Below, in pieces: positions 596-63,388 of a DNA stretch of 64,000 nt. The stretch lies in NCBI GenBank assembly GCA_051294905.1, contig CM119374.1:23746001-23810000 (forward strand), written 5' to 3'. The notes under the pieces are model-generated. The model ran no database searches and was not told where the DNA came from. It saw only the letters and a list, made by a program, of their open reading frames with translations. Source of the stretch: Botryllus schlosseri. Lineage: Eukaryota. Within the stretch, counting starts at the first letter, position 1. Every line of letters begins with the position of its first letter. Made by a program: the position numbers and the translations under genes.

Positions 596-3500
596 TTATG
601 CAGCTTGGAAGCCTTTCGTCGAAAGAGCCACTTTCGGTGCACCTGGATGTTTGAGTGCCTACGAGAGTGTATCCCTCCTCGCAATCGAACTGTACTTCTT
701 CCCCAATCTCGTAGAAGCTGCGGGTAGGAGAGGTGTAACCCTTTACCGGATTACCAGGAAATCCGCAGGAGACTCCTGAAGAAGGATGGCCAGACATGAG
801 ATTCCATCTATATTACTATGATTCAACCAGAACTATATGTGGATGTAGAGCCTATGTATGTAGATGTAGAGCAGTGGTGTCAAACTCAAATTGCGTCGGG
901 GGCCGGACCAGGGAACTGATTCCAAAATGTTACCTCGTGCCCTTGCATTTCACCTGAATACTTCATTATCAAGCATATGTAGATAATACGTGGATATACT
1001 AGCAAGTCGCAACACCTTTATTGGCGCATGATGGAATTGGCAGAAATACGATGATTTTGTGGTTGAAGAGCTATTTTTGGTTCATCATTTCATAAAACTC
1101 CGAGTTCGCTGTGCATTTTTCGCCTTCTCGAAATAATAATACAATAATTTATAGAGCGCCGAATATAGCAATATATCAGTACAGAATAGGCGCAGAACAG
1201 GCGCAGTACACAATAGGCAATGGAATATATAAATAAAAGATATGTATAAAATCGCGAGTGCATATAGTTGTTGGGCAGAATAAATACTACTGTAATTCGA
1301 ATGCTCGTGTAAATAAAACGGTTTTGATTTTGCGCTTGGAAACATATAGTGAGTCAGATAGTCTGATAGAAACTGGATTGATTGTTTGAAACTGATTGTT
1401 CCACAGAATGGCGGCTGATGAAGAAAAGTTTCTCTCGCCGCAGATTGATGTTTTGACTCTTGGAACTGATAAGAGTTTATGTGACTGAGAACGTAACGCC
1501 TTTATAGGATTGTAGATTGTCACTTCTCTCCATGCAATTGAAAACATACAGAGATGAGGTGTTAATGTCCCCGAATTGTTCGTTATATTGTGACCAGAGT
1601 GAAACCGGGTGGTCATACTGGTGCCTATGAACAATGAACATGCTCGACATTTGCTGTGTCGGTGGAATATTTAATGTATGAAATGCCATCTAAATATGTT
1701 ACGAATGTGATGAAAAATATAACGATTTTTCAATCTACGCAGAATTGCTTCGCTGATGAATTCGTCTGGCGGGCCGGATGCAGCCCGCGGACCGTATGTT
1801 TGACACCCCTGATGTACTGTGATGTAGAGCCTATCTATGTAGTTGGAGTTATCTAGCTATTGAAGATTGTCAGATAGTCTGAAAGCTGTGACGGATTCAA
1901 ACGCAAGAAAATAAAGGATGAGTGAATGCAAAATAACCCTGATTTTATTACTTTTGATTGCAAACACCTCCCGAATATGAACGACACAGCCAATATGAGT
2001 AATCACAATGCAATTTCATATTTCGATAAAGTTGAAAAGACAAAGCCAGATGTTTGCTTATATATGATTTCATATTATATTTTATCTGATGTATAACTGC
2101 TCAAATTTGGTTATATTCGGGAACCTATTAATCCTAAAAATGACTCATACTTTCGCAAGTTGGCGATGCTTCCGAAAATCTTCCGTTGGTACCGCACATT
2201 GATGTCCGACTCCCTGTCAGTTGATATCCTTCATCGCAGGAGAAAGTGACTTTTTGATTGTACATATACTTCGGCAAGTCAGGAGCGAAAGATCCGAACA
2301 CCGGCTTAACAGGAGGTCTACACGATTGCTCTGAAAGCATAGAGTATAGTTTCAAAGTGCTTAAAGCACGAGTATGGGTTCGCGATTGTGCTCGTTATTA
2401 CCAGAACAATTCGGCACTGCGTCTGAAAATTGGCCAGATGACAGACATGTAGCCGATGTTGATCCAACAACCTCGTAACCTCGAATGCAGGAATACGTTA
2501 CGCTGTCTCCTATTCCGTACAACGGCGAAACGGGCGAAGTAAAGCCATTGTCCGGAACACCGGGGAAAGAACAGGATACTCCTGTAAAGCGTACAGCAAT
2601 TATTATGAATATTCCCTTTCATCGCAGCAACGAACTGTCTTAGTGAATATATGAAAATATAGTTAATGATTTACTTCGATATCAGATAAGCCCACATCCC
2701 TATGAATATCAAAAGACTATAGCAAGACTGTGCGTAATAAATGAATATCCATGATTACTTTTACAAACGGCTTGGCCCTTCGAAAATTGTCCATTTGCCA
2801 AACAAACTGCTGATGTAACACCCGATATCTCGTAGTTCTTGGTGCATGAGTAGGTAACTTCATCTCCAACAGCGTATCTTGGCTGGAATGGGGAAATTAC
2901 CCCGAAGCTGGGAGCGCCTGGGTTGTCGCAGTATGCCACTGCGATAAGAAAATATGGTTAATAACAAAGTTGATCGTATGAAAGTCGACAAACTTACATT
3001 TGCATGTAGGCAGGAATCCCGAGAATCGTCCACTGTCGGAACAGCGACTAGACTCAAGTCCGACCAATCGATAACCGTCATCACACTCAAAAGTAATGAC
3101 GTCATTCACGGTGTATTCGTCTTTCTGCGGTTGCGTCTTGCCGTTATCCGGACTCCCAGGAAACTCGCAAGTGACAGCTGTGAAGAAAAACGAGTCATGC
3201 GTGAAAGGCTAGTGAATATACACAGTATATACACAAAATGTAGCTAACAATGTAATTGCCAATAAAGTTAAATATATATTCTTAATTCCATGTTTAGCAT
3301 TATATTATGTAACAAAGTAAACTATAGTTTCAAACTTACGATTGCAAGCGGGAATGGAGTCTGAAAATTCTCCGTTATCTTCACACCTTATGAAAGATGC
3401 TCCTTTCAATTCATATCCCTCCATACAACGGAACGACGCTCGTTGGCCCAAACCGTATTTTGACCGGTCTGGATAGATTTCGCCGAATCTTGGAGCGCCA

Positions 3501-6500
3501 GGATTGTCACAGGTGATCCCTAAAAATAAACAAAGTTCGATAGAGCACGATGAAACCATCACATCATTGATTATCTGAATAATAGCTAGGGAGCATCAAT
3601 TGAGCTAGGAAAGATATTCAATTGCCACCATAAAGGATGTGAAATTAGTGACTTTTTCAGTCATTGGCTACTTTGCCCAGCTATATTCAATAGAAACTTT
3701 ACTCAATACATTTGAAACAGAACTTTCATGCAAAGAAAACGTGATTGAACATGTGTGAAACCAAAGCAAAATCAAGACAATTCGTTGACGCGTTTTACGG
3801 TAGGGAATATCCAGTCCGTACCGTTATTCTCAACTCGATATCTTGATGTAGGCGTGAAGTAATGAAAGGACATGGTGTCACTTACTGCTACAAATCGGTA
3901 TTTCATCTTCGAATACACCCCCCACGCCACAAGTAGTTGATTCCAATCCGTCAACGACATAACCGGGAATGCATTCGAAGGTAATCAGACTGCCGACAGA
4001 GTAGGTTGGCCTCACTGGCTCGGTAAATCCGTTTTCGGGATTGCCAGGAAAGCGACACCCAATTTCTAAAAATGATATCGAAATTCAAAAAGACGCCAAT
4101 CCGTTGTACAAATTCCGCTAGTTATTTTCTTACCTTCACAAAGTGGTATCCTGGCAGAGAACACATTTTCGTCGACGCAGGTCGCAATGCTTGCTCCTCT
4201 TATTCTGTAGCCGTCATTGCATTTATAAGTGACGTCATCTCCCACATTATACGTAGCTTGATCTGGGGATATGGTTCCGAACGCAGGAGAGCCCGGGTTC
4301 CGACAGGTGATAGCTGGAAATCAAGTTGATAAACGTAACGCAATGTCATGCATTGATAAGAGTGGGACATCTCGAAGGAGAATGCAAAATGACACAGAGA
4401 TAGAAGCATGCTATAGACTGGCGTAATTCACAAGCCGAGATCAACATCTACAATAATAGTAAACGGAATTGTAATGCACTGCGCCTATGTATTAAAATTT
4501 GATCACAGTCTCTGAATTCTATATGCAGTTAGGCAATGTACAAAAATCTATTCACCAGAGCACATAGGTAGAGCTTGACTGAACAGTCCACTTTCGGTGC
4601 AAACGGAAAACGAAGATCCTTCCAATTTGTAGCCGTAGTCGCACGAAAACGACACCCGATCTCCAACAAAGTATTGTCGTTTTGGGGGGAATATCGATCC
4701 CGATTTGATTGAACCAGGAGACTTACATGACACTCCTGGAAAGCACGAAGACGGAGTAATCAAATGATGATCAAATTATATTGAGAAATACTTAAATGTG
4801 ATAATCACGATATTCAAATTCAACATCAATAATAAATCCTCGTACAGTCATCTTAATTCATGTAATACAGTATAAACTCATAACTGGTGCATCCTGCACA
4901 CTAAATTTGAAACCCTGGTCAGGTTAAGGGTAAGTTTAGCTTTTGTTATGGAGATTGGATTAGCTCAGAGTTTAGGTTAGTTTAGACGCGAGCCCATTAT
5001 CGTAGAGATATTTTAAATTGGTCATACTTTTGCAGAGGGGAAGTCCTTGTGAAAATTGACCACCAAGTTGACATATTGAAGACTCTGCGCCCTCCAATAC
5101 ATAACCACTCCGGCAAGAGAACTTTACTGATTCGCCAACTCTATAATTGAGCTGCTGTGGAAAGATTGTACCGAACTGTAAGAATCCTGGACTTGGGCAC
5201 GTGAAAGCTGAAATAATAAAATAAAACGTTGAATAATCATGATATTCTCTGAAGTAGCTTTGTAAACATACGTTCGCAAGTTGGAATATCCCGAGGGAAA
5301 AAGTCATCTTCTCCGCATGTAGCTGAGACCTGGCCAACCAAATTGTATCCTTCGTCGCAGGCGTATGAAATAGTGTCTCCATACTCATAAGTGGATTGCG
5401 AGGGAGTTATGTTCCCGTTCACAATTGGCCTCGGTCGCACACACGTAATACCTGCCAAATCGACAGCAATATGATACTAATTCATTTTACGTGTAATAAC
5501 TATAACATAAACCTTCGAAGTTGACTGTAATAATTGCGTTACTATTGTCGATCATGATTCATGTAAGCCGGTTTTATAATTAAAGATATTTGTGACATGT
5601 TCATTAGCTGCTACATATCACGGAGAGCTGCTGGTTATCGCTTAAACCACCAGGTGATTATGGAGTACAGTGGTGGCCCTATTAACGGGGAGGGGGGTGG
5701 AGGGTGGGTGGGCGAGACTTACCGGGGGGCCCTATAAGCATCTAATCGTAAATTCTGGGGGCTCCGCCCCCAAGACCCCCTTTCGCATCTGATGGAATTA
5801 TCTATCTTTCACTGCGTCAAAGTTTGGCCAGATGCTGGATTCGGCCATATCTATCATTGCATGTGTGCAAGGATGGGCTACATCAAAACTAAGTCATTCT
5901 ACCGCATGCAGAGACGTTATGAATATACGGATACGGGACTTTTCTAACAAATGCAGAGATTGGATGATGATTGACACATCTGTACGGAATCATATTCTTG
6001 CTTGGTACACGGTTTCCATGTTTATTCGCTATTATCCCTGAGAAAAAAGCGCATAAACCAAATAGGGGGGCCCTTCGACCAGGGGGAGCGGGCGACTGCC
6101 CACCCCGCCCACCCCCAAAAGCCACCACTGATGGAGTACCATTTCTAGGGTTGCATTTAAAACAAAAATCAATTTAAAACACACGTGTTTAAACATGGCC
6201 CTTGTTTAAAACATTTTTATTTTTTCTAGCCATGACACGCGAAACTTCAATTGTGACATCACAGTTGATTGACATTGACAATTGTAAATATACGGTAAAT
6301 ATGGCTCCTTCGACGACAAGGGCTCCCGACCACTGTCATAAACAGACACAAAATATCTTCAACTAGGACTACATCGCCATGCAACAATTTTAACGGTCAG
6401 CGATCACCATCATCAGAACACCCATTCCGTACCAATAATTATCTATATCTAATTGCTATAACTGTCGAACCAACGGCGATTGCGAGAGTTTCAACTACTC

Positions 6501-9500
6501 CATTTCGTATACATCGACTATATGGGGTGCAAATCGTCCGTAGACTCACACTACATGTACAATTATGGCATAATTATACAACGTTTGAAAAAAACACAAT
6601 TTTGTGTTTCAAGAAAAGGCGTTTGTTTAAAACACTGTTCAAGAGATGTTTAAAACACCGTTTGTTGTAAATGCAACCCTAACCGTTTCACACACTGCAG
6701 AGACTTTCTGGTCAATCGCAACATATAATAGTGTTTGTTGCTGTATATTTATAGCGATAACTATATCGTATTATCATCATCAGATCACATCGATATAGCT
6801 AAATGCACAATAGCATATCGTTCTTGTTGAAGCATGCTACACATGTTCATGTTCAGTCAGCAATGATCGAGAAGTATTGATCAATGCAAATCCACTGAAC
6901 TTACGATCGCATCGCACTTGTTCCACGTTGAACTTCCCGGATCTCAAACATTCACCGACGCTTCCGCCGACAATCTTGTAACCTGATGAGCAGGTGTAAG
7001 TAATGCCGTCTCCAATCGCATACTTTGACTTGATCGGGAAGAACGAATAAGTCGATGATGAGCTCGGTGCATTGCAAGTGATTGCTGTAATAACATTATA
7101 ATTACCGTACGAATGTATCGCACAGGTTATATACGCCATACTGTCACAGTATAATGTAATGATAAATCATATACACGAGGAATATTCAAGCAACAGTTTG
7201 ACACACCTTCACATCTTGGCGTTCTCTCTGATAATGTGCCGTCTATTTGACAAGTTGCCGTCTCAGATCCAACCAGATTGTAACCCAAATCGCATGAGAA
7301 TCTGACACTATCCTTATATGGTATTGACACTAAGCCTCGTGGCGATACGTCGCCGTCTCGGATGAAAGATGGAATTTGGCATGTTATTTCTGCAAAAAAT
7401 ATTGTTTGAAGTTTGGCAGTGCTGTTATAACCCTCGCTAAGGTTGATCGGGCCGAGTGTTGGATTATTCTGATGTTTCACAGACCTACCTTTGCATATGG
7501 GCTCGCGGAACGAGAATTGGCCTGTCGCTTGACACGTTCTGGTGCTGGTACCCTCCAAAAGAAACCCGTCGTTGCATTTATACGTTATGACGTCTTGATA
7601 CTTGAAAAAACTTGACGATTCAACCAGATAACCGTCATCGGGCGTCGACGGTCGTCCGCACGTAACAACTGCACCAATAGATGTAGACAATGAATATTAT
7701 CTTAGAGCTTGAAGGCCGAAGGGAGACAGTCAAAGATGAGCAAACGTATTCAGCAGATACATGGTGACGTCATGTTGATAGCTAAAGTTGCTTGGGGGGT
7801 TAATTCTGTTATAGCCGGTGATTTTAGGGTGTGCCGAAGTGAACGATAGGGAATAAAATTAATAAATGACTATAATACTGATTCTCTTTCTCACGGTGAA
7901 AAGTGCTATTTACCGGCTTCGGATAGCACGCAAGCCTCCTCATCATAGTCATTGATCATTCAAGGAGATGTAAAGCTAGGTAGGACCCAAGTTGTGCCCT
8001 TACACTATAATGGTGTCGGAAGGGTGTTTTACACATAATTTTACGCGGTCCTGTATTATAAAATCCAGACTAGTTGAACGTTTTCAAAGTCATACACTTA
8101 ATCAGCCCAAAAGACAAACCTTTGCACTCAGGGACTTTGTCGGAATATTGGTCTTGTCCCACACAAATCGTTTCCGCTTCACCTTCAAGCTCGTAGCCAG
8201 TATCGCAAGAGAACAGCACGGCGTCATTCAGATAATACGTCGCGCGATCGGGAAACACATCTCCATTATCTGGGACCAACGGCCGGGCGCACGTTATTCC
8301 TGAAAGTAATGTAGGATTGTTACACTATTCTGCGATATCCAGGTATCAGATATACCAGAGGCATACTAAGTAAAAGGTGACCGCTTTCCCTAGTTAAGCA
8401 GCAGTCAAACTGATAGTTCTCGGAAGCGTTTTTTGGTACGTAAGGATCCGTTATAAGTTCAGTCATCGGTCTGTCTACAACTGGGCAAGTGGACTTCTAC
8501 CGGATTCAATAAGCCTTCAATATAAATAAGTTAGAGACAAGCATGTTACAGTGTTACTACATCCACTTACTTGCGATGTCACAAATTTGTCCAACAAGTT
8601 ACCAAAATACAATATAACCATCTATTCTATATACAATCTAAGGCCAGCATAAATAATGCATAAAATGCGAGTTGTATGTAAACTCAGTATGAACCTATCC
8701 ATATTGTTGCCCGCGCTATACTAGAATATTACAAGCCAGAACGAAATTACACCAATTTGTTGAAATCCACACTAATGAACACAAGAAGCTTCGCGCTTAC
8801 GCTCGCAGATTGGTCCAGCCGGTGTGAAGGTTGCCTTATCCTCCGACGTCAGAGTGCAGGTTGACTCCTCGTTGCCGACAAGGCGATATCCAGTCCTGCA
8901 CGAGAACCTGATCGCATCCCCGATTCCGTAATCTGCCCGCAACGGCTCGACTTGGCCGTTTCGCAAACGATTTGGCCTCGCGCAGCGAATATCTAGACAA
9001 CGGAACGCCATCATTACTCAATTTCAACGCCTATGGGATTTCGCAATTGCAATGTCTGTCCTGTGGCTGTGCGTGGGGGCGAATCCAAAGACATGGAAAG
9101 GAAATATTCCACAGAAAAGCGATTTCCCAAAAACAGTGGTTCTCAACCGGGGTACTGTTTCGACTGATCAAGGCGGCCCGCGAGATCATGAGATAATGAG
9201 GGTTTCCGTGGATATAAACATTAGTGAGGACGTCGAAATACTGACAATACGGAAGTGGATCACAAAAAAGGCCATCAATAAATATGCTCCGACTCTAAGG
9301 CCGTGATTGCGATGGGCCGAATCTGAGGACCTTTTATGTCATCAGCTTTCCAAATCTTGCACTCGGGGTACTCATAGTGCCGTCGTGTCGCCGTGAACTA
9401 TTTATATCTTTCGGCGGGTATCGCGAGGTTCAGAACCACTGCCGTGAAACTATGTGGTGTAAACAAGGGCACACTCCGATCAGTTTGGAAGGGACGGATA

Positions 9501-12500
9501 ATAATTGGGGATGGGTAGCAGTAATTTGTAAACAAGGATGTGACGTCGAGGATCGGTTGTGTCTTTGTAAACATACTTATTGTGATGGTTATGCGGTCGA
9601 CAAGTTTGGAGGGTAAGGATTCGCACATTTCGCCTCTTGGTTACGCCACGGAATGGAAACAAATTCTAGTTTCGTCGCTTTATTACTAACGTTTTTAACG
9701 CACCAATGTAGACACGGGATATAATAATATAGACTTCGAGAGCAATAACATGCTCGGCGGTAATGCGCACGCTTACTTTTGCAAGACGGAATTTCGTTTG
9801 AATACAGATTTTCGTCAACGCAAATTGCTTCGCTCTGGCCGACCAATGCAAATCCGGACAGGCATTCAAACGACAGCCGATCGCCAACGTAATAAATCGA
9901 CTTCAACGGCGTAACGCGAAGGTATGTTGTCCGGGGCGGACCGTTGCAAGTCTTTCCTGTAGGGTAAATATACATGTGATTCTGTCTTAATTATATTCGA
10001 CTGTTTTTGGGACACGTACTTTCGCACAGTGGAGGCTGCGGTTGGAAGGTAAGCTTGTCACCAACTCCCACGCACGTCGACACGCTGGCCCCTACAAGTT
10101 TGTAACCCTCGTCGCATTCGTACAGTACTTTCACGCCCCGTATATAATTAGAGGTGTCGCTGACTAGTCGTCCGTTTTGGATCTCTTTCGGGTCTTCACA
10201 TCGGCGTCCTAATAAGACAGATTGACTTTCAGCATCGCTACTTCCGTCACATGGCAGTCATACGTACTTCCGCAAGTTGGCGCGCTTGGTTGAAAGGAAA
10301 GGGAGCCCAGGTCGTTGATTGTGCAAATTGAGCTGTCGCTGCCTTCAAGTTCATAATCATCGTCGCATCTGTATTGTATGGTATCGCCTTCAAAGAATTT
10401 TGGTCTCTTTTCCTTGTTTGTGATAATTCGTCCGTTCAGTATTTCTCCAGGTAGAGTACACGTAGGTATTTCTAGCAGAGGAGAAAGTTTGATTCGTATT
10501 GTGCGTAATCAGAGGTATAAAACGAATGGTAACATTTCTTTTCTCGAAGGGTCAAGCATTCGCTTCAGTCAATACAATTTAAAGCGCGGCTAACATCAGA
10601 TCATGCACCGGTAATTAAAAATGGCTCTAACAGAACACCTGTTCACAAACAAACAGTAGCAATTATGGTCCTACGTGAACTACTGGTCCGTAGCCCTATT
10701 GTATATTCGATTTTTCCACAGGTCTGGACCAGGCTATAGATGACGTGATTCGTGTTATTCAGCAGGAAGAAAATGGTACGATTGAAAGAAAGAAATGTTC
10801 ATGAAATATTCGTTAATCACTGGTAGTCAGAATCTCACTTTTAGTTTACAATTTTCGTCAATTCAAACTGGCAAAAGAATCGCGATACAGTAAAAAGAAA
10901 AGGAACAGTCGAAGGCACTGCAGTGGTTCTCAACCTTTTTGCCTTCGCGGACCCCTTTTGGACTGTCACGGATCCCCGCGGACCCCCACAAGTTTTCGTT
11001 CAAAATTAGCTGAATTATCGTGGAACTGTCATCTGTCTTGTGCAAATATTAACTGTAGGCTACTGTAAAACAAGCCACAAAATGACTTTTCGTGAAAATG
11101 GCATCATACTATCTGTAGAAATTGGGTATAGACTTATATTATTTGGAAGCGATTTTTGCAGCTGTATATTGTCTTGAGAATCTGCTTCTTCGATTTAATA
11201 TGAACGATCATGAGTGCCGAAAATGTTTCCACAAAAATAGGCGCTGAGGAAAGTAATATTACCGCGTGACGCTTCCAAAGACACCTTCTGCTGTGATCGC
11301 AACATATATGGCACCATAATTGAGAAACAGGGTTTTAAATGAACATATAACGCCCAGCCTAGTCATTTCAATAATGCATCTCATCTCGAAGTTATTCTGG
11401 AATATTCGTTATGTATATCATAGTAGAAAATGGATTTCGTGGCGAGGTTTCAATCCCTTCATTGAAATTCCGAAATTTCCATTTCAAACGTCCCCAACGA
11501 GGCAACGAAACGTCTCCAAACAGCAAAATGTTTTTATCAATAGGCTATTGGCAATTTGGCAAATAAAATGAGTTTGAACTTTATGATATTTTATCTCCGA
11601 CACCATTATTGATGTGAGTCCTTAAGTTTTAGCAATTATGAAACGAAACTGTAACATGCTTTCGCGAATTTAATTATATTACAAATTAGGTTTCAATCAT
11701 TTTACAAAAAGGTTTCGCGGACCCCCTGAAAATGCTTCGCGTACGCCCGGTTGGGAACCACTGCACTAGGTGAAGTCCATTAATTAAACTATAACCTTGG
11801 CCTACTAATACGGTACTAAAATAGAATTGCATGTTCAAAAGAGGCAATTGTACACTCATTTATAGAGAAATATCGAAAAAACATGGGCAAGCGATGAATA
11901 CAAATGTTTCTGCAAAGGGTATACAGACCCACTCGCTGGGTCAAAAATTCGATCACGTAACCTCAAAATGTAGACTAGTCACAGGAACGGTTGGTAAAAT
12001 TTACATATGGGCTATTAATATGTCTGAAAAACGTGTTGTAGGCTACATAGTTGGAGTCACCTTCGCAGGTCGGCACCTCCGCGTCAAAAATTCCCGTCTC
12101 AGTACATGTCAAAATCTTCGCTCCAACCAGTCGATACCCAGACCCGCAATCAAAGGCAATTTCGTCACCCACCAAATATATGTCTTTCACAATCGATATT
12201 ATCTTGAGAACGCCGCCTGGTGGCAACTGCGGGTTGTTACACTTGATGACAGCTGAGAGTAAAATACAGCTGTTCTTATTACTGGAAATGATTGTGCGAT
12301 CATAAGTCTCATATTTTGATACACTGCAGTGCATTTCGAGTTGTCGTTTTCGGTCTCCGTGATGGTAAGAGGAGTAAGATAGGCACTTTCCCTATCAATT
12401 CCGGATGGAATCAGACTTTTAATGTTATGTTATTAATGTCCTTGCCGAACCACTCCTCCATTATTACAGTGTTCGCAATACAGCGATGATTGTTGTGCTG

Positions 12501-21570: not shown

Positions 21571-21619
21571 GTGCTTCATATTAAACCAATTAAAGAGTAG
21601 GCTACCCAAAGCTTGATAA

Positions 21620-47183: not shown

Positions 47184-47374
47184 TGAATAGTATATTCATA
47201 TTGAAATAAAACCGAATATTTTCGGCTGACACTCGTCAGGGGTAATTGTCAGCAACTAGTAGAGAATTGGAAATAACATTGTATATCAACAAAATATGAC
47301 GTCACCAGCATGAAATTTCGAACGAGAGAGCGTTCAATTGTATATTGAAGTTTTCTACCTTCAAGAAGCTCTTT
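47184..47374 (-). mobile_element. Solo pLTR with inverted tail, Penelope-like family
   Basis: Homologous to 15452-15613. Carries the 33-nt tail shared with 16985-17017 (4 mismatches) and a TSD ATCTAG(A/G)AAT (47174-47183, 47375-47384). Confidence 0.85.
47210..47253 (-). ncRNA. Minimal hammerhead ribozyme variant (copy 4)
   Basis: Core intact. Stem I has one mismatch (ACCC/GGUU) and the upstream motif is GCUGACA instead of GCUGACG. Confidence 0.72.
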
Positions 47375-48872
47375 ATCTAGGAATATATACCAACAATGCC
47401 TACCAATGCCGGATGTGATCCAAATTACCAAAACTATGACCATAAATCGCACAAATACAGCCACCATTGTATCAAAATATGTCATCAGCTTGATCCTGGT
47501 ATAATGTTTTTGGAGCAAGCAGATAGACTCCGACGTTAAATATTGGCGGAGAGAATGACAGAGCAGTTTAAAGAAAGTCATGCAGTCACATGACTATCAT
47601 TATCCCGAATAATACAAGGAAAATTAAATATTACCGAAATATAAACCCAGACAGAGTATCTTCTGACACCATATCGGTATGCAGGCCAGATGTGCTCTAT
47701 TTTGTAATATACAGGCCAGGATAATTGCCAAATTCGCGCAGCGGAATTTGTTCCATTGATTAATGAATGCATTCATTGGAAATACAACTGCAGGGGCATG
47801 CGGAGTTTTCTGCGTATTCAAACATGGTATACATGAAGTAATGCATATACTTGTGCTTATCATGAGTCAGTGTATATGCCGCAAAAAACATCAAGGACAA
47901 AAATAAACTGCGTCCTTTCCTTTCCAATCCGAATCACAATCCGAAACCAAAGCATATGCAAGTGCATGGTATAGGATTTTCGATATAAGTTCTATGCTAA
48001 GTTCGCTGAAAGTAATCCATGATTCGATGACCATCCAAACCGACACGGCCTTACAGCAATTCGCAATGTGGGAAACATTTTCATATTAAGTTTATACGAT
48101 CTATCAGTTATATTCAAGTCTCAGTGCACGTTGAAACGATTTCGCTATTCATGGTGTGATGTCAATGTGCAGCCGAAATAATGCACCACTACTGATCGTG
48201 GCCGGACTCGCAACTTTACACGACAAAACGAAAGCAATGCCAGAAAGCAAAAGTACCTGACGCAACGAAAGCATGACATCATACAGCAGTAATAGAGTAA
48301 AACTGTGGCCACTGCTGTGTCGATATTAGCAAATGCATATAGCGGTAAATGTTATAAGCTTATTTCAACAATACTGACTTTGCGGAAATAGGTGAATCTA
48401 TTTTGAAGCTAGTCGACAAATCCGAAATTTAAAATGATCTGGCCTACCTCATTAAGAAACTCCTCTAATTTTATCCATGCACTTAAACTTAAAGTATATG
48501 AATCGCACAATAGATGACTGAGCCTGTCCCCTCCTTCAGTAGATTGCAGAAAATATTTGATGGAACAGCATCAGTGCGAAATGCTCGAAACAGCGAGCGC
48601 TTCCAAGCTAAACAACATATAATACTCCTTACGTTATGATAGCCCACAAAAATACCGGCTTACTCCCCGAAATCCCATCCTTACGAGAATAATGAAGAGC
48701 CTAATTGTTTCAATTCATCTCACGCAGGGATTACCGCTCCAAGATCTAGAGTGCATCATATAGGAAAACAATGAAGATCCCTATAAATACTCATGCAATC
48801 GAACATGCGCTGAGAAAACTCGTAACCGCACCCAGCAGGTCGAACGAAAACGTATATTCATTTGCTGTTGGA

Positions 48873-51800
48873 ATGGGAATTACTTGTGTGATATTGGCAG
48901 CGTTGGCTGTCGGGACGCACGCTCAATTCATATACCGTGAGTGAATTATGGTTAATGTCCATTGTCCACGTACTCTCTCTGTTGGTGACATAGCAAATTC
49001 GCTAGATATGAGTTAAGAAACCAAAGTCAAATTATATATCATATTGCTTGCCACAGACGCCGGTTGCAGCGACCCGGTTGTAAATACCGTCGGTTACTTC
49101 TACCCCTTGTCATCATCCGGTATCCATGAGATCGGGGCAACAATCAGGTATGGCTGTCCTGAAGGCTTCATGCTATACGGTTCCGAATACGCCAGCTGTA
49201 AAGGAAATGGACAATGGGACGCAATTCCGAAGTGTTTGGGTAGGTTTCATTGATTCTGGATTCTCGTGTATCAATGTAGTAAATATTAGTGTTCTTTCAT
49301 ACGTGTTCTTTCATAGTGTTCTTTCATACTAATTTTAGTCATACTGTCCTCTATTTGTGTTCAATTCTATCACAACGTGCAATTATATTGCATATACCTC
49401 AATTTCAGAATACTGCAATTACCCCAGTCGACCGCAACTGATAGCCATTCCAAATACAGACGCAATAACTATGGTGTACATGGCCGGTCAAAATGTATCT
49501 TTTAAATGCGAGCCAGGCTACAAACGAGTTGGACCTCCAGCCGCCACGTGTCTCGGCCGAAATCTCTGGAGCGACGAAGTCCCAAAGTGCGTGTTGGCGC
49601 AAATATACTTCGCAACTTACCTTAATCAAGGTAACATGATACGTACGAGGATGAATAATACTGATTGAATATATGATTTGCGTCGTGACGTCAAGTCTTT
49701 ACAAAAGATTGGCGGCACAGAGAATCGCGTATAATGCACATTTACATATACCATACATGAATGCGAATCCTGATTTTGTAAACCACGTAAACTCTTGGGC
49801 ATTTCCTGATCACCGCGCTCAGATCATACTATATAGTATATACGAAAGTTGTTCTTCGCCTTTACTAACCAGGCGCTAATCTTCAAGCCTTCGGTGAACC
49901 CCAAAATTTCGCCTATAGTCAGTAGAACAGTAATCTTTCACATTACACACCTGATACATTACTGTAGAAGACTGGTTCATAAAATCAATTGTGCATCAAC
50001 AACAGTGTTAAAAGAAAAGAAAAACAATAAAACTGGATATACACACAACACAAAGGATTATCATTAATATTTACTGCAAATCGCTGTGAATTTTGCTCTA
50101 TGAGTCTGATGTGAGTCTTTACCTCCAGCGAACCCATGAGACTGTCTCAGCCAACCCCAGTTAAGAACCAATGATCTATACGACCTCGGACAGAGACAGG
50201 TTGTCTTTATAAAAATGACTCATACAAATACACTGCGTCACGAAATGCAGTATAGCTATCTGTGCAAAATCGATGAAACGATCAAACCAGACTTTAATTT
50301 TTGAGGCTGAATTGAAGTTACCATAATATCGATATATCAGCTTGGTATCAGCTCTACCAATATGCCCATTTGTCCATACATAAAATGACTTCTGCAAGGT
50401 ATTACCGTCACAAAGTATCATATATACAGCAGGGTGTATATTACCGCCGTTGGACTGGTCAACCATGTCCTACGCACCAAGACCGCCGAAGAACGGTCGT
50501 TATCCAGTCGGAGCGAAAGTCACGTTCACCTGCTTTGACCGCTATAAGTTGTACGGATCGAAATACTCATATTGCTTGGAGAACGGAGAGTGGAACGCGT
50601 TGCCGGAATGTTCCGGTAATATATTTCGTCTCATTGTGGCTGTGAGCAGTGAGCACATATGACGTATGCCTGGGGTGCTCGCTACTTGGCGGGGTGCGAT
50701 GTATTTTTCTGATGCAGATGTAACCGTGATACCAACCTTCCTTTGCCGTACCCAGATCCGAATGAAATGCTAAACCTTTTCATTTATCTGTTTTTCTCCT
50801 CAGGATAAATTTTTACTAGCGAGAATTCCGAGGTTTCAACCCTTTTGCCATATATTTAGGGTTTGAATTGGTATATGACAATTATATGGTAGTAATCAAT
50901 ATGCTTCAGATATTCCCATGAATGATTGCAGTCATACATGAATTCTCAAAGACAAGTGTTACACATTGTAAACAGTCTGCTGACATGACGGAAATTTTCA
51001 GCTTATTATAACCGTTGTGCGATTTTCAGATGGCTGCTTCATGGGCAGCAGTGATCACGCTATTTTGAAACCGGCACTCGGAAAGGGAAGGATGACTTAC
51101 AATCAAGGAACGCAGGTTCGCATTGCGTGCTCAGACGGATACCGCGTTTTGGGAGCGAAGGTAGTCACGTGCAAAGAAGATGGTTCGTGGACCCATTCGC
51201 TCACATGCGCAGGTCGATCCCCTCCACACCTAAATATCGCACATAAAACATTGTGACTTGTAGTGGACTTGGAGCCAGCAACAATACATTCTGATGGCAA
51301 TCAAAAATATTTATCGTCATGCTGTTCTTTCCCGTAATTTCAGAAGTGTGCGATGCAGTTCCAAATGAAAACTTGGTGTATTTTCCGAAACCTTCCGCCG
51401 ACAATCATGTGTATAGAGTCGGGCAAACTGTGTCGTTCCGTTGCGAAGCCGGACATCGATTGGTCGGTGCAGACAAAGCCACTTGCCTAAAGAAAATCAA
51501 ATGGAACGCACCAATTCCGAGATGCGAAAGTGAGCAGAATTGCTTCGACCCAACATCGACGATGGGTCGGGTCATGTTTATTGCCTTACCGATATCGGGC
51601 TTTTGAGCCAATACCGCTAAAACCGATTACTAGCACCTTCACCAATACCCCCCATATTCAACAAACTTTTAAAAATTTGTGGTTACCATACGTCCTCTTG
51701 CAAGAGGATTTGTCCTCTGTTTTTCATAATTTGAAAGTGTCCTCGGAGGACGCCTAAACGTCCTCCTTTATGGGCTTTTGTACTCTTTACCTATAGAAAG

Positions 51801-54800
51801 TAGTAATATGCTATCATATACGCGACCCCAACGCAGTGAACGGCAGAGTTTAGTAAATAAAATAGGGTAAATCGGTAGTCGAGTCAAAGTGATGACCTTT
51901 TTTTTAGCAAACATCGTGAAAAATCGGGTAATTCGGGGGTCGAGCCGAAGTGATGACCTTTTTTATATTTTTTTGGTCAACACAGTACTATCGAAAATTT
52001 GTCAAAATCCCCGCTTTTCTTTTCCGGTGCTGGAGCTTTCATAATATTCGACAAGTGCCCTCTTTTTCGGATCTCAAAATATGGCAACCATAATCTAATT
52101 CAACTGGCATTTCCAAAACTTCGGTGCTTCATTTGAACAGCTTTGCATCCTTACTATATGATTGGACATGAAATAAACTAGAATGGCTGTATCTGTACAC
52201 CTGTACACGGACGTGGTCAGTAACGAAGCACTTATACTTTTGTATAGTACTCAAGTAGGTTTTGCATACTTTCACAACTTACTCGAGTGGGTATGATTTG
52301 AGACCAATTCTGCTTAACAATTTGTCAAGCTAAACTGGGCCTAGAATGCTGAATCTTGTTGCTTACATCGAAATCGCTAATTCCACATGTACTTGGGGCA
52401 AAATGTACGACATTACTTCTACTTCTACTTGGTCACCAACGATGACAACTTCGACCTCCACTATATTCGTAGTCTAGTGGTTGTTGATTATAGTTGTGAT
52501 GATTCCCTACTACCATGTTGTGACGTCACGGAAATTGCCCATATTTTTCTACCTTTAATGGCCGATGCCGATATTTCTTTCAAATTTTGATATCGACTTG
52601 ATATTATCGGCAAAGCGGTAATCGGTTGGGCTTTATTTATGAAAGCTACAGTAATGTAATCTGGTCAGAACTAACGAGAGTCGGGTCGATTCATATGACT
52701 ATATCACACATATTGTTTCCTGTATAAAATTTCGAAAATCAATGTATGAAACATGTAGGCTACTTCAGTACTCTAGTTTCTCCTGAATCCGTTTCGCCTT
52801 GATCAGGACATCGCTCAGCACGAAGATTGCTTTGCTTCTCGTTGCATCTAGAAATCATCACACGTTGCAGCGCGCCAACTGTTTCTCATTCGTACGCAAG
52901 CTACGCACCGAAGAAAAGACTGTATCGCGTCGGTGACACTGTCACGTGGAGCTGCGATCCTGGTTTCAAGTTGGAAGGCAGGACCGCCGCGACCTGTTCG
53001 ATTAAAGGCAAATTCTTTCCGCCACGACCCATCTGCAAAGGTTATCGTTATTGCTGATTTAGTGTTCGTGGTCGAATGGTCATTTACATCAAGCCTGTAT
53101 TTCGTATTATGATTTCTGATCCGCCGACTTGTGGCACGTCCCAGTTCGTAAAGGTAAGGCAAATGTAATGACAATATCAGGTAATTTTAGGAAGGAATTT
53201 TAACAATGAGCAAGGAGCAATGAGCATGCATCCACTTTCTAACTCTTTCTGTATAAGGGCCCTGGGTGACCCTGGCACTATCATATATCGATACCTTTGT
53301 ACATATGAGTTTGCTTATATGTGTTTTGTATGAGTGTGTTTCCATCTGTTCTTTGCGTGAAGGAATATACAATTGCATATATATATAAATCGGTAGTTAT
53401 CAGAGGTGGTCAAAGTAGTCAAGAAAGCTACTCAAGTAGAAGTAGAAGTAGCGACGAAAAAATCTACTCAAGTACGAGTAGAAGTACTTCTTCAATAAGC
53501 CATCTAAAACTACTTGAAGTAGAAGTAGAATTGACTGACTTTAAATCTACTCGAAGTAAGTAAGTAGTTTTGAAAACAGTCTTAATTCGTTCGCATGAAC
53601 TGTAAAAAGCTGCGAATTGAGCTATGCGGCAGGTGCAGACAGCTTGATTCGTATTGAGGCATCCAAGGAGGTATCAATTTTCGACAGAATAAGCATTGTT
53701 TCGCATCATGAGACGCAAATTATAGTATTGATATGAAAATGCGATACTAACCCTTTGTTTACTAGAAGACCCCGTTTTTAGAGAATATCATAGCATCGCG
53801 CCATACCCCATATTATAAGGCCCCAAGTTTAGGCGACGACCAATACTTGTATCGGATACGGTTTCATCACTTTACGCGATTAGTATACGTCAATAACAAA
53901 TATTGTGGATCGTAAAAGTGATATTCAGTGTAGCTTTATTTTCGGAAAATAGAGGCATTACTACACTTGCTTTTATGCTTCAACATGTATGTTCTGCAGA
54001 CAAAAGAACTTAAAGTAATTAGAACTCAAAGTATGATACTCGCAATTGAAAGTGAAATACAAATACCACTTCTAAAAACCGAAAAATATATTTCATGTCT
54101 TTTGTCCATAAAGCTTCGAAATTGACCTCCTAAAACAGGTGTAACGTTAAAAAAAAAGCTGGATTTTCAAGATTATCAAGACACGTAATGGGCTGTTAGA
54201 TTACGATATGATAGGTAATTGCTAGATTGCGAAACATTAGTTTCAAACGTTATGGTGGGCCATATTTACTGTGATGAAATATTTGATACGGGCGACATTG
54301 CGGTGTGAGAGGAACCAAGCAATCCGGTACCTAAATTATATTCACTGATACTTTCGTGAAAACATATTTGTCACTCCATCACTACTATGCAGCGTTGTAA
54401 ACAAGGCTCCGAGTCACAAGTCAATTTAACTTTTACAGTTTTGACTCGAGTCAAGTCGAGTCATTTTCAATTCACCACCGAGTCAAGTCCGAGTCCAAGT
54501 CCGAGTCTTTGTGTTGACTGTTCAGTTTCCAGTTAAAGTCTTGCTAAACCCACTTTTTGTTACTCTGTTTGGTGATGTTGAATGATTCGCATTGATTTTC
54601 CTCACTTTTAGCAGTTTCTGATCGCAATTTCAAGTACCAATACCCTAGACGAAATCCCAATAGCGTGGTTACTTTACTATTCTTCGAAATTACAGTGAAA
54701 TGTTGGTCTTGGCCATCTGAGTCTCTAGTCATATGACTTGGTTCGAGTCATGCTCAATGACTCGAGTCAAAGTCGAGTCAATACACAGATTGACTCGAGT

Positions 54801-57800
54801 CGAGTCGACTCATTTCCGTATTTAGAGAAAATGACTCCAGTCAAGTCGAGTCATCAGAAAATCGTGACTCGAGTCGGACTCGAGTCATTCCAACCCTGCT
54901 ACTATGCATGAAGCGCAACAAAATTTTTGGGCTATATTTGACTTTATGAATATTAAATGTTGGTATATCGTGAAAACAACCCCGAAATTCCTCAGGCTAT
55001 CTTTCGTAATGGGGGATTAAACTACTTCTACTTGACAAACTGAAAATAGCGAAAAGTAAGTAAGTAGATCACAAAATATTAGGAAGTAGAAGTAGAAGTA
55101 GAGAAAATCAGATCTACTTGAGTAAGTACCAGAAGTAGATGAGATCTACTTGAGTACTTCCAAAAAGTAGAAGTACTTCGTTACTGACCACCTCTGGTAG
55201 TTATATACGTCAATCAGTTCCATACCGGAAATTCAGTCCCGCCCGATCATTACATCGGTTAAGTGGCTGTAATCATCTAAAAAATCATGCTAAGGGTTAG
55301 GATTGCGATTCGTTTATCTTTATGGCATACGCACGATAGTAGATGTTGTATGCGACGGGGTCGCATCTTCAAGTAGAGTGGTTCGCATGGTTAACACACA
55401 TAGCCTATAACACACGACTTCAATATGAGCGAGGTTATATTGTATATAGACAATGATTTAAACTGAAGTGTACAAATTACAGCCCACATTCCCAAACATT
55501 ATTGCATAGGGTTGCATTTGAAGCAAAAATCAATTTATAACAAACATGTTTTAAACATGGCATTTTTTCTTGAAATGGCATTTATCCAAAACACCGTTTT
55601 CACAGGTTCCAAATGAAGTGTTTTAAAACACCTCTTGTGTTAAATGCAACTCTAATTGCATCCTCAAAACGAACTTCTAATCACATGGTTGTGTATAGGT
55701 ATTGGTGCCACCGTCGTAAAACCGGGATCGTATGTTGCGTCGAAGAGGGCCTGCAAACGACCGCGTGACATCCCCGGTGGTGTGATAACCCCCGTGAAGG
55801 AATACTACACGCACAGCTCCGAAGTGGAGTTCAGTTGCTTTCGCGGAAGATACCTGGTTGGCATCGCGAGAGCTACTTGCAGAATGAGAGGATTTGACGA
55901 CAATTTGCCGAAATGCGAACGTAAGCGTTGTTATGAGACTTGATGTGCCGTTTGGGATAAAACGAATCTCCTCGTCGTCATAAACAACAACCGCTGCTGT
56001 GCAATTAATTCGTGATTAGCCATGTCTGACGATACTAAATGACTGAAGCAGCGACTTATTCCGGTCAATTTGGAGGTAAGATCACAGAGACGAGTGTGAC
56101 AAGTGGCACCATCAAACACGCCGCAGACAATACCTCTGTATACGATCCGACTTTAATCAGCTGCGTTTCAAGTTACGCAACTGCGTTCTACTGCGCGATT
56201 TGTTTCGAGCCGTGTTTGCATCATCATTACCGAGAGATGTCAAATCTGGGTATATCAGAAAATTAGACAATGTTATATGCATAGCGTCACAGCAGATGTG
56301 AAAATAGTTTACCAGATTATTGTTGAGTTTTGTTGACTTAAACGCAGTATACACTGTAAACGAAAATCTTGTATTTAGCCATTTTCACCATGGGATAGGT
56401 GAACGCCACTTTTTCGTACAAAATCTTACCTGCGGTATTCCAAATATACCAATACATCAAATACACCAATTCTCGCGGACCTATATCCTAGACAGAACTA
56501 GAAGTTGTGCGTGATAAAAATCATTCGACTCCTATACTTTCTCCTGTACTGGAATAGGGTTGAAAGAACAATTGTGTACCATCAAGTGTCGATAGCCAGA
56601 TTTTCACCAGGCGCTACGATAGAAATATACTATCTCCCTCCATATATTGTCAACCCGTGTATTTTCCGTGTTGTTGTTTCATAATTTACATAGAGATCAT
56701 ATGAGCATTTCATACTATATGCGCTGCGCATACCATGAAATATGTATAACACTTGTGACGGAATATCAATAGATATCGAATAAAGACCTCAAAATTGCAC
56801 GTGCGCACTATTCTCATCCATATATCTCGTCGGGTAATTGATGGCGTCGAAGTATTGTCACTGCGTTTGATACTTATGAATCGGGATCATTCTTACCACA
56901 AACAGAAACATCCATCCAAACATACAAATCAATTCATCTGCACCTATATAGGCATCCAGTGCAACCCGCCGCGGCGCCCTGCTAATGGCGTTATTTTGGA
57001 TTTGCCGAAGAAAACGTACTTCTTTGGAGATACAGTCCGATACGTTTGCAACTCAAACTTCGTCATGTACGGGCAATCGTCGGCGAAATGTTTCGCGAAC
57101 GGTCAGTTTTTTCCGGGACCACCAGCTTGCAGACGTAAGCCGATTTTCTTTCCATTAGCGATTTTCGACTTATCAAACCAGTTTATTTCATTCTTAACGA
57201 TCATTCCAGCTTCTAAGCAAAATCAAAATATTAACAAACACGCCTTACACCATATTTACAGCGATTTCTATGTAATAGAAATTACTATCTTGATATTAAT
57301 GACCAGAATGGCATGTTGTGATTGGAATAGGGTCGAGCAAGGGTTGTGTGGCGAGATAGAGCATTGGTATTATCCGCGGTTGCAACACCAATGGGTTGCG
57401 GGTTCCAGTCCGACCGAGGTCGACTTCAGAATTCCTATACCTAAGTGTTGGAGGTTTGTCTAGGCTCCTCCTCGCCACCTCATCCGCGTACGCGGTGTCT
57501 TACCAAAAGCCTAGAAGTTGGCCGTGCTATAAGTCGGCAGTTACGAAATGAATATGAAAAATATCGGCCTGGTGTAAATGACCAATTTAGGGTTGTCCAA
57601 AATTTGGAAAATCTTACGAATCCTACGTTGCAATGTCTTATTCTATAGATTATTGATAAAAAACGACACTGAGCCTGAAAGAAGCTCACAGGAACGCCGT
57701 TAAGATTTCGTGCAAAGCGTTTGAAAGTAGCTGCCGAAGAACGGGCGTGCCACCGACCATAGAACGGCGAGAAGTCTAGCAATCACGAAACCACGACTAT

Positions 57801-59636
57801 TGATTGGCTAATCGGCTATGCTTCAATGACCACGACAGCAGCAGCTTGCTGTGAAGGTGATCAAGGAGTCTGCTACCGGCGGCGATTCTGAAGCGCATTG
57901 TATGTAGGTTGACAGATAATGATTTAGGATTGATTCAGGGTATGTTGAGGTACGAAATACATGATGAACAAACAACAGCTGCTTCACAAAAACGTCTAAA
58001 GCATGGCCGCTTTATTGTGAAGGGAATCGCCGTAGCCTATATGCCTGGTTTTCAACGAGAGAAAGCATAGGCGCTTATGCAAGTAGCGACGAATTCCTAG
58101 TTTCAGAAAGAATATATCATTATTGAATACAAAGATAAATCTTAACAATGACACTATAATTTGTGTGATCTTATTGGGCTCAGGTTGTACCACATAGTTG
58201 GAGTTTCGAAAGCTCTAATGATCGGCTGAATCAGCGGGTTATGCTTGGCGCTTGTCAGATGCTTGCATCAAAATGTATTTACTTGCAAGTGTTGTCAAAG
58301 TCCTTGATGATGACGCAGAAAAGAGGTGTAAAAGTAAGCACATACTATGCTGGACATCATATGTCAAAGTTCTTAATATCGCGCAGAAAGGGGGTGTAAA
58401 AGTAGGCACAGACAATGCTGCATAGTGCATAGCATCCAGCATAGTTTGTACATCATATCAAGCATAGTCTGTACTTGCATTTAAACATCGTTTCTGTGGC
58501 ATCATTAGGGACTTTGAAAACACTTACAAGTGAATTCAATTTGCTGTAAACATCTGACAAGTGCCAAGCCTTAGCGACGTTTGATTCAGCCGATCCCTAG
58601 AGCATTCAAAACTTCAATTATGTACTACAACATGAGCCCAATAAGATCACACAAATTGTAGCGTCATTGTTAAGCTTTATCTTTGTATTCAATAATGATA
58701 TAGCCTTTCTGAAACTAGGAATCCGTCGCTATTTGCATAAGCGCCTATGCTTCCCCTCGTTGAAAACAAGACATATAGGCTACGGCGGTTTCCTTCACAA
58801 TAAAGCGGTCACGCTTTAGACGTTTTTGTGAAGCAGCTATTGTTGTTCATCATGTATTTCGTACCTCAACATACCCTGAATCAATCCTAAATCATTATCT
58901 ATCAACCTACATACAGTGCGCTTTCAGAATCGCCGCCGGTAGCAGACTCCTTGATCACCTACACAGCAAGCTGCTGCTGTTGTGGTCATTGAAGCATAGC
59001 CGATTAGCCAATCAAGAACCGTGGTTTCGTGATTGCTAGTCTTCTTGCCGTTCTATGGTCGGTAGCACGCCCATTCTTCAGCAGCTACTTTCAAACGCTT
59101 TGCACGAAATCTTAACGGCCTTCCTGTGAGCTTCTTTCAGGCTCAGTGTCGGTTTTTATCAATAATCTATAGAATAAGACATTGCAACGTAGGATTCGTA
59201 AGATTTTCCAAATTATGGACAACCCTAATGACCATAGTAGTCAACAAACACCATGAATACCACAAACAAAGAAGAGCAAGGGTTAGTCTTGCTCCAGGAC
59301 TTCACGGTAACTAAAATATGATGTGAGCTATGATAAGGGTATGGTGGGATCACCGTTACGACAGTCCCGGTCCAAATTCTATATCCATCCAGCTCTAAGA
59401 TATTCGTAATGCGACTTCTGATCCGAATCCTTGAATCTCTTATCAGCACCATCTTGTCGTCACCATTGCGATTATAAGGAAGGGCGTCCGTGTCAATGTG
59501 ACCTTTATTGCGTGAGTCGTGGGGATTGTTGCATGGATTTCAGCAATCACTGCCGTAAGTATATGCCCCTCATCGACATGTTGTGGATTTTCCACCAAAT
59601 TTATATTTTCATACAACAGGGCGGTTAACTTACTGA
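48873..59636 (+). CDS. Gene E: signal peptide, 8 Sushi/CCP domains and a C-terminal somatomedin-B domain (about 579 aa)
   Basis: Signal exon 48873-48936 (MGITCVILAALAVGTHAQFIY). CCP exons 49057-49239, 49409-49630, 50433-50615, 51030-51212, 51344-51529, 52852-53040, 55699-55920, 56952-57134. SMB exon 59447-59554 (SCRHHCDYKEGRPCQCDLYCVSRGDCCMDFSNHC). Terminal exon 59620-59636 (RRLTY*). Exon lengths sum to 1740 nt, a multiple of 3. Confidence 0.83.
53043..53149 (-). mobile_element. 5'-truncated SINE tail inserted at a splice donor
   Basis: TGGTCATTTACATCA...CCGACTTG matches the SINE at 32108. Flanked by AAAGGT at 53037-53042 and 53150-53155. Confidence 0.6.
53401..55196. mobile_element. 1.8-kb hAT-type non-autonomous element
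   Basis: TIR CAGAGGTGGTCA...TGACCACCTCTG, AGTAGA subterminal repeats and a perfect TSD GTAGTTAT. Confidence 0.88.
54390..54898. mobile_element. GAGTC-repeat MITE nested in the 53401 element
   Basis: TIR CAGCGTTG...CAACCCTG with a perfect TSD CTACTATG. Confidence 0.85.
55507..55654. mobile_element. TAGGGTTGCATTT-family MITE
   Basis: TIR TAGGGTTGCATTT...AAATGCAACTCTA with ATTGCA on both flanks. Confidence 0.7.
57350..57585 (+). mobile_element. tRNA-derived SINE, 5' part; the tail resumes at 59228-59275
   Basis: A-box-like TGGCGAGATAG, B-box-like GGGTTCCAGTCC, and homology to 32108-32346. Split at ATGACCA by the foldback element. Confidence 0.75.
57588..59227. mobile_element. 1.64-kb foldback (almost wholly palindromic) element
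   Basis: Termini TAGGGTTGTCC/GGACAACCCTA. Arms of about 800 bp are reverse complements and decay toward a centre near 58425. The ORF track shows the same peptide on both strands (57480-57782 minus, 59126-59314 plus). Approximate TSD ATGACCA(A/T). Confidence 0.9.
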
Positions 59637-62763: not shown

Positions 62764-63388
62764 ATGAAAAGCATTGGGTATATTCTGTTGGCGGTATCTG
62801 TTGCCTTACCGTACGCCTTGACCGACGACAATGATGATATCTACACAATATACGGTAGGACTCATCACATCAGACACAGGGGCTGTACAGTGTACACTGT
62901 GCATAAATGGATGTTGTATTTATTTCAGATCTTCAAGACAGACGACCAAGGAGAGATTGTTCATACCGCGCCATTCCACACGGCATTATGGAACCCGATT
63001 CCGCAACCTACACATCTGGAACTACCGTGAGGTATTCATGCACAGTAGGGTACGCGTTGGTGGGTGCCGGAGCATCCACTTGCGAAGATGGTCGATGGAA
63101 CAGACCAGTTCCGAATTGCGATGGTATGTAAAAAGTAGCAATGACAGTTTACTAAACGACTAACCGGTTTGATTTTTGCAGTCCAATTTACTCCAACAAC
63201 CACACCCAGTACAATAGTATGCTCGTATTACGCCCCGGATGATGGTAAAGCGATACCGCAACAAAGATCATACGAGCCCGGAGTATCTGTGGCGTACGTG
63301 TGCAACACTGGATATAAGCTGGTCGGGACTTCGATCAACATTTGCCTGAAGGACGGGACATGGGTGTTGAAAGCACCGCAGTGCAATC
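62764..63388 (+). CDS. Gene D: signal peptide and at least 2 Sushi/CCP domains, 3'-incomplete
   Basis: Signal exon 62764-62854 (MKSIGYILLAVSVALPYALTDDNDDIYTIY). CCP exons 62929-63123 and 63182-63388, phase 1-1, canonical Trp retained. The last donor C|GTAAG stays open. Confidence 0.85.

Follow-up and report, generated by a model that had tools for sequence, protein, structure and literature searches.

A probable tandem array of secreted CCP-repeat genes in Botryllus schlosseri, RCA-like in layout and with somatomedin-B domains at the ends of several members

Is a cluster of genes built from complement control protein (CCP, or Sushi) domains in a tunicate genome related to the vertebrate locus of regulators of complement activation (RCA), or is it a system of a different kind? 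Tunicates, the sister group of vertebrates, include Botryllus schlosseri, a model for allorecognition and innate immunity. We analyzed a 64,000-nucleotide stretch of the Botryllus genome (hereafter the window; C4:23746001-23810000 of a 496-Mb assembly) together with a further 240 kb on its left and 40 kb on its right. Coordinates are those of the window, negative in the left flank and above 64,000 in the right flank; beyond +104 kb the right flank is represented by one match to somatomedin-B (SMB), assigned to a gene designated H. A first-pass annotation had described five clustered CCP-only genes as a candidate RCA-like locus that may be an independently expanded family for complement regulation or self/non-self recognition. 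In the reading that we favor, with a probability of roughly 70%, the window is a slice of a tandem tunicate array of genes for secreted CCP proteins, several of which end in SMB, and this array is similar to the RCA locus in layout but is not its orthologue. Judged from sequence, the tests run here give no support for kinship with the vertebrate RCA locus.

A CCP domain typically contains about 60 residues, with four Cys (paired I-III and II-IV) and a near-invariant Trp between Cys III and Cys IV. After an initial scan with a regular expression (regex), CCP modules were counted using a hidden Markov model (HMM) trained on the locus's own modules. The window contained exactly 49 modules in five blocks, 26 of them minus-strand and 23 plus-strand:

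600-19356, minus strand: CCP block A, 26 modules
24948-31880, plus strand: CCP block B, 9 modules
38244-44922, plus strand: CCP block C, 4 modules
49065-57130, plus strand: CCP block E, 8 modules
62958-63384, plus strand: CCP block D, 2 modules

This 26/9/4/8/2 split reproduces the counts of the first-pass annotation exactly. Pfam, which was run on sampled CCP exons rather than on all modules, returned Sushi (PF00084) matches with E-values of 1e-15 to 1e-23. Nearly all CCPs were encoded by one exon each with phase-1 borders on both sides, the acceptor usually lying 8 nt ahead of Cys I and the donor 4 nt beyond Cys IV. We also scanned for signal-peptide-like first exons with a phase-1 donor and found five in the window, at 19646(-), 23239(+), 37148(+), 48873(+) and 62764(+), in agreement with the four clear exons and one candidate described previously; the chance rate of such exons was about 1 per 16 kb per strand (344 kb scanned). 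Four signal exons (those of A, E, D and gene H outside the window) were located less than 250 nt from the first CCP exon, and the corresponding distances were 1.1 kb in C and 1.7 kb in B. No other type of extracellular domain had been noted in the window. This was supported for lectin, EGF, protease and CUB exons by Pfam analysis of 96 open segments of at least 70 aa outside the CCPs, which detected nothing but RVT_1 and one Sushi, and by an EGF regex that had no match within the window. Transmembrane (TM) exons, likewise reported as absent, were not recognized in the window, and no glycosylphosphatidylinositol (GPI) exon was found there either.

The proposed clustering is real: the locus groups CCP-repeat genes that differ greatly in length and encode secreted proteins. 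However, although five groups of a signal exon and CCPs are present, the picture of five genes proved too small: the window cuts genes A and D, and the array contains at least nine genes. In addition, the description of these genes as CCP-only does not hold because of SMB domains, two in A, one in E and probably one in D, although only a single SMB exon is located within the window itself.

Gene A was the most informative member of the cluster. Its parts within the window, and the region that it shares with gene B, are:

596-19646, minus strand: in-window part of gene A, comprising the signal-peptide exon and the first 26 of 55 CCP exons
19568-19646, minus strand: first coding exon of gene A (signal peptide), with a phase-1 GTGAGT donor
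19647-23238: 3.6-kb region shared by A and B, between divergent start codons

The divergent ATGs confirm the head-to-head arrangement of A and B that had been noted. Gene A extends 24 kb past the left window edge, to -24385, and the left flank adds 29 CCP exons (to -23061) and two SMB exons (at about -23850 and -24307). Joining the signal exon, 55 CCP exons and 2 SMB exons at phase-1 sites gave a model of 58 exons with a 10,434-nt open reading frame (3,477 aa) and no internal stop; the frame was open throughout, and the Cys pattern was kept in all 55 CCPs. Since most CCP exons have the same length (38 are exactly 180 nt) and the linkers between modules are constant at four residues, the encoded protein probably forms a long thin rod.

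When 1.84 billion protein representatives were searched with a profile built from 24 modules of gene A, the one outstanding match was Styela clava XP_077970683 (3,714 aa; 59 matching stretches, 2,915 bits), which belongs to a group of entries, XP_077970681-3 (3,714-3,716 aa), named 'CUB and sushi domain-containing protein 1/3-like' by NCBI and representing the orthologue of gene A. The name is misleading: Pfam detected 58 Sushi and two SMB domains in XP_077970683 and no CUB domain. The gene A model and this protein were 48.6% identical in a single alignment of 3,419 residues, and 32 Styela modules best matched gene A at one constant offset, which indicates that the module order was in place before the two styelid genera split and that the modules have not been homogenized. 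Besides module order, the two genes share Phe-for-Trp modules (see below), two C-terminal SMB domains, followed in Styela by a hydrophilic tail, and a convergent CCP-EGF neighbor, which in Styela is an 11-CCP + EGF gene kept at the 3′ end of the orthologue. Differences included about four extra N-terminal CCPs in the Styela protein and the upstream neighborhood, as Styela has no CCP gene within 10 kb upstream of the orthologue, whereas Botryllus has gene B 3.6 kb away. Given that the module order is conserved one-for-one with Styela, gene A is old and stable rather than a recent expansion. The array around it grew by gene duplication, which included recent segmental copying immediately to the left of the window.

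A further feature of gene A was replacement of the canonical Trp. Among its 55 modules, this position was occupied by Phe in 47, Tyr in 3 and Trp in 2; Trp was retained in the first and last modules and in module 45 (in a numbering that omits the first). The same position was Phe in 50 of 59 modules of the Styela orthologue. Trp was kept in the modules of D, K, I and H, the last three being array members outside the window, and in giant CCP proteins of amphioxus, annelid, brittle-star, frog, Clavelina and Ciona. A Trp-less gene A module was predicted to fold as a CCP (pLDDT 97.9), with TM-scores of 0.82-0.91 between the prediction and solved CCPs of C2, C4BP, CD55, MCP and selectin.

The array itself reaches well beyond the window. 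CCPs were detected over an interval that starts at about -55 kb and reaches at least +102 kb, and SMB to +105 kb, giving at least 160 kb with about 120 CCPs; the next 185 kb to the left contained none. The array holds at least nine gene units in the interval from -55 kb to +105 kb, and four of them (A, E, G and H) end in SMB. An SMB domain is a knot of about 40 residues with eight Cys. In a genome-wide scan, all five SMB exons above the cut-off on C4 fell in the array, at -24307, -23850, 59491, 84923 and 105455; two of them close A, and E (59.5 kb), G (84.9 kb) and H (105.5 kb) are closed by one each. To the left of A are genes I (5 CCPs and an EGF-like module) and K (12 CCPs and the same module), whose modules are 87-93% identical, and a block designated J, probably a pseudogene, in which gene A modules 45-51 recur in degenerate form with Cys lost (88-96% amino acid identity). 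Segment -55230 to -41186 corresponds to segment -30376 to -14229, gene I copying parts of gene K. These I/K and J copies point to recent segmental duplication beside the window.

The combination of a CCP run with a terminal SMB was rare: only four of the 150 best CCP-rich representatives ended in SMB, all of them from tunicates (Styela, Clavelina and Ciona). Clavelina lepadiformis XP_076815314 and XP_076806012 and Ciona savignyi H2Y5C5 have a CCP run and one C-terminal SMB; however, they contain 11-19 CCPs with normal Trp and are not colinear with any gene of the array; they are paralogous members of the family.

Two side observations concern the EGF-like and SMB modules. In K and I, the EGF-like module is located between the first and second CCPs (-54961 to -54857 and -30112 to -30008, plus strand), a layout also seen in the Styela neighbor gene (L032 49894-50097, minus strand). 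In addition, at least 61 SMB exons occur genome-wide, with dense clusters at C15:17.30-17.54 Mb and C2:16.89-16.92 Mb that suggest large SMB-repeat genes.

How far does the resemblance to the RCA locus go? The vertebrate cluster (CR1, CR2, factor H, C4BP, DAF and MCP) and the Botryllus locus both consist of several clustered CCP genes, arranged in tandem, varied in length and often with one module per exon, and the CCP fold is common to both by the predicted TM-scores given above. The locus is unlike RCA in its SMB tails, in having no TM or GPI members that we could find, and in the location of PFKFB. Apart from an anchor or an oligomerization tail, RCA proteins consist solely of CCPs, and the vertebrate cluster has membrane-bound (TM or GPI) as well as soluble members; we know of no RCA protein that contains an SMB domain. 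No exon for a membrane anchor was recognized in the locus, and the tails of the Styela, Clavelina and Ciona proteins are hydrophilic. PFKFB, a neighbor of the RCA locus that the first-pass annotation had suggested as a synteny marker, does not link the two loci because the sole two 6PF2K matches are on C6 at 21.46-21.48 Mb, whereas the array is on C4, with the window at 23.75 Mb. These two PFKFB-type genes lie head-to-head and 25 kb apart (C6:21458060-21483751); in each, a single open frame of 448-498 aa covers the entire 6PF2K domain, and the genes may therefore be intron-poor.

Gene A also differs from RCA proteins, and from CR1 in particular, in that it has Phe for the canonical Trp, shows identity of just 25-30%, and lacks any periodicity of the kind produced by the seven-CCP long homologous repeats (LHR) of CR1: mean identity among its modules was flat (0.35-0.38) at every spacing from 1 to 20. 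A profile search of PDB ranked matches by CCP number (CR1, CR2 and factor H), which has no bearing on kinship. RCA proteins bind C3b/C4b and have decay-accelerating or factor-I cofactor activity. It has been reported that RCA proteins carry five motifs in an M5-M3-M1-M2(-M4) pattern (Ojha et al., PMC6683126).

A link between gene A and complement is nevertheless already on record. Matches to the gene A profile included GenBank QKY88669.1 (618 aa), deposited as 'putative C3b receptor CR1_tm [Botryllus schlosseri]'. Its eight CCPs correspond to the gene A exons at 8805, 6909, 4138, 3344, 3002, 2763, 2406 and 2155, with 92-98% identity over the mapped stretches, a level that places the analyzed genome in Botryllus schlosseri or a very close relative. 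Gene A is the gene behind this cDNA, and the complement idea had thus been raised for it before. Compared with the full gene (55 CCPs, 2 SMB and no anchor), the cDNA is a fragment with exons skipped: its start ATG falls in intron sequence upstream of exon 8805, and after skipping several exons it passes from exon 2155-2322 into the following element:

1091-1634, minus strand: intronic dispersed repeat, lying between CCP exons 2155-2322 and 600-767; source of the cDNA's 'tm' tail

This repeat has 376 candidate copies in the genome (78-80% identity). In the present genome, the frame that enters it from exon 2155-2322 stops near 1290, and the hydrophobic 'tm' stretch of the cDNA sits in a different frame. 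The membrane anchor of the deposited receptor is therefore doubtful. As an observation on the cDNA itself, its 'transmembrane' tail is an exonized or retained dispersed repeat. A search for homologues of QKY88669.1 yielded no other close protein in its length range; the other matches were 22-32% identical, and the non-tunicate relatives at this level included selectins, SUSD1, and bird CR1L and CR2. Its C3b-receptor name is based on generic CCP similarity (25-32%).

The plus-strand genes were then delimited as follows:

23239-23305, plus strand: candidate signal-peptide exon of gene B, with a phase-1 GTGAGA donor
24934-30274, plus strand: gene B, with 8 CCPs; Lys-stop comes directly after the exon that ends at 30268, which lacks a phase-1 donor
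31707-31884, plus strand: CCP exon counted as the ninth of 'B', phase 1 at both borders; either alternative or orphan
37148-37235, plus strand: signal-peptide exon of gene C, with a phase-1 GTGAGG donor
38244-44937, plus strand: gene C, 4 CCP exons (own HMM)
48873-48936, plus strand: signal-peptide exon of gene E, ending in a phase-1 GTGAGT donor; the first CCP lies about 130 nt downstream
49057-57134, plus strand: gene E, 8 CCP exons, all phase-1 compatible
59447-59628, plus strand: SMB exon of gene E (Pfam PF01033, E-value 6.6e-8; match 59431-59628)
62764-62854, plus strand: signal-peptide exon of gene D, with a phase-1 donor
62956-63388, plus strand: gene D, first two CCP exons (own HMM)

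These smaller paralogues are transcribed divergently from A, each with a signal exon of its own: B with 8-9 CCPs, C with 4, E with 8 and an SMB, and D with at least six. The uncertainty for B arises from its ninth exon, which cannot follow the preceding one in frame because the latter ends in Lys-stop and its sole donor is of phase 2. An ATG at 22434 was considered as the start of B and was a weaker candidate than the exon at 23239. In gene C, a stop is located three codons beyond the last donor, and an AATAAA or ATTAAA signal at 45055. The SMB exon of E is 64% identical to that of G (84878-84985; tblastx), and no second SMB exon for E, nor any for B or C, was found in our search. When the regions downstream of B, C and D were compared by tblastx for terminal exons, they shared only SMB exons and repeats. 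Gene D continues with four CCPs beyond the window, six in all to +67064, with no terminal exon, and downstream of it five more CCPs and an SMB exon at 81284-84985 form gene G, before which no signal-peptide exon was detected in the 344-kb scan. In paralogue H, G1-like (70% identity) and G2-like (78%) modules come immediately after a D6-like module (65%), on which basis D and G are probably one gene with 11 CCPs and an SMB.

This raises the question of whether the array as a whole consists of fewer and larger genes, with B, C and E as one unit of 21 CCPs and SMB that has internal alternative promoters, and D and G as another. We consider this doubtful, and the merger of B, C and E taken alone is somewhat more so. 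The junction in H and the missing signal exon of G argue for the D-G part, and for B, C and E one may point to B and C having neither SMB nor a recognizable terminal exon and to last CCP exons with phase-1 donors; however, C and E each have a good upstream signal-peptide exon with a phase-1 donor, and a B exon runs straight into a stop and lacks an in-frame donor.

Several observations weigh against our reading of the window as a slice of an array of separate secreted genes. No recognizable terminal exon was found for B or C. Because every CCP exon is phase 1-1, other ways of joining them would also stay in frame. Four RNA read sets examined over 44000-49999 covered only three repeat patches, with zero depth on the last exon of C and on the signal exon and CCP1-2 of E, indicating that earlier matches of read sets to the locus came from repeats. 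A membrane-anchored isoform may arise through the exonized repeat in other alleles. In a separate search, small RNA-like contig sets held 13-23% of the words in a stretch of gene A that is half exonic, which is suggestive only. As for function, the candidacy of gene A for C3b binding derives solely from a best-hit name, and the role of an SMB tail, rather than a membrane helix, in tethering or oligomerizing the array proteins is one that we infer only.

Among alternative functions, the most plausible, although we hold it to be somewhat against the odds, is that these genes encode structural or adhesive matrix proteins of the tunic, epidermis or blood vessels, SVEP1/polydom- or CSMD-like and unrelated to complement. 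In favor of this, gene A encodes a secreted giant, probably rod-shaped, whose module order is conserved; SMB domains characteristically occur in proteins of adhesion and matrix; and NCBI labels the orthologue CSMD1-like or SVEP1-like. SVEP1/polydom and CSMD1-3 do have very long CCP runs. However, they carry VWA, EGF, pentraxin or CUB domains, and CSMD has a membrane anchor; none of these four domains was found in A, B, C, E, D or the Styela orthologue, and the five Botryllus genes are therefore not members of the SVEP1/CSMD family. A probe for an unspecified Styela 'CR1' gene stains larval epidermis (PMC7540406). Some complement-regulatory activity has been reported for polydom and CSMD1 (PMC6683126).

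It is unlikely that the array is the tunicate counterpart of RCA, with proteins that bind C3b and regulate or receive complement, whether by descent or by convergence. The clustering of CCP genes of different lengths and the deposition of a gene A fragment as a putative C3b receptor would fit this idea, as would the presence of C3, Bf and MASP and the C3-dependent phagocytosis of Botryllus (PMC7565592) and the reported expansion of 'CR1' genes in Styela, in which a count by BLAST gave 16 'complement receptor 1' genes (PMC7540406). One review also refers to the polymorphic Ciona CCP protein vCRL1, along with an early SCR cDNA and 'a putative CR1', both of Botryllus (PMC5465252). Against it stand the generic similarity behind the receptor name, PFKFB on another chromosome, SMB tails, the failure to find a membrane anchor other than a repeat-derived TM that is out of frame here, the absence of LHR-type repeats, Phe in 47 of 55 gene A modules, and a PDB ranking that merely tracks CCP number. 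More doubtful again is a specific version in which the array is the tunicates' working complement-control and C3b-receptor system, with secreted CCP rods capturing C3b and held on cells or matrix by SMB tails in place of a membrane helix.

Very improbable, in our view, is a polymorphic family for self/non-self recognition, similar to Ciona vCRL1 or Botryllus fester. The difference between the reference cDNA and the genome (2-8% of residues per exon, with exons skipped), recent segmental duplications beside the window and the CCP-bearing individuality markers known in Ciona (PMC5465252) would be in favor. Against it, gene A modules are conserved position by position with Styela, an ill fit for a fast-diversifying receptor, no membrane anchor was found, and tunicates are in general highly heterozygous. 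Immune-related CCP proteins of invertebrates include vCRL1 as well as the class C scavenger receptor (SR-C) of Drosophila and shrimp, which also has SMB, in a CCP-MAM-SMB architecture. Both differ from the proteins described here in being membrane proteins with few CCPs, and SR-C in its MAM domain; neither MAM nor TM was found in the array.

Under the reading of the window as part of a secreted, RCA-like but non-orthologous array, the products would be extracellular binding or scaffold proteins, and for gene A the leading candidate activity would be C3b binding, hence a role as an opsonin bridge or convertase regulator. For Botryllus, the one complement-receptor-like CCP gene on deposit appears to be only part of a far larger secreted gene, and the corrected model of gene A alters the way in which its proposed phagocyte C3b-receptor role should be examined. 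The array of at least 160 kb, the CCPn-SMB design and the Phe-for-Trp modules were not described in the papers that we found. If the proteins do bind C3b, the locus would represent an independent origin of complement control, and an SMB-tethered system, if true, would be a lineage-specific solution and a handle on complement regulation before the vertebrate RCA locus. If they do not, the case would serve as a warning against 'CR1' naming from CCP similarity alone.

The window also holds repeats and retroelement fragments; an Rfam scan gave no match at the gathering threshold, including none to hammerhead.

53-496, left window edge: high-copy repeat of about 450 bp, with more than 6,000 first-look candidates (85-89% identity)
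15614-16921, minus strand: Penelope-like retroelement fragment in a gene A intron (Pfam RVT_1, E-value 1.4e-4; weak GIY-YIG, E-value 0.01)
37607-38083, plus strand: Penelope-like element fragment, with a C-terminal open reading frame similar to that of the 15614-16921 fragment

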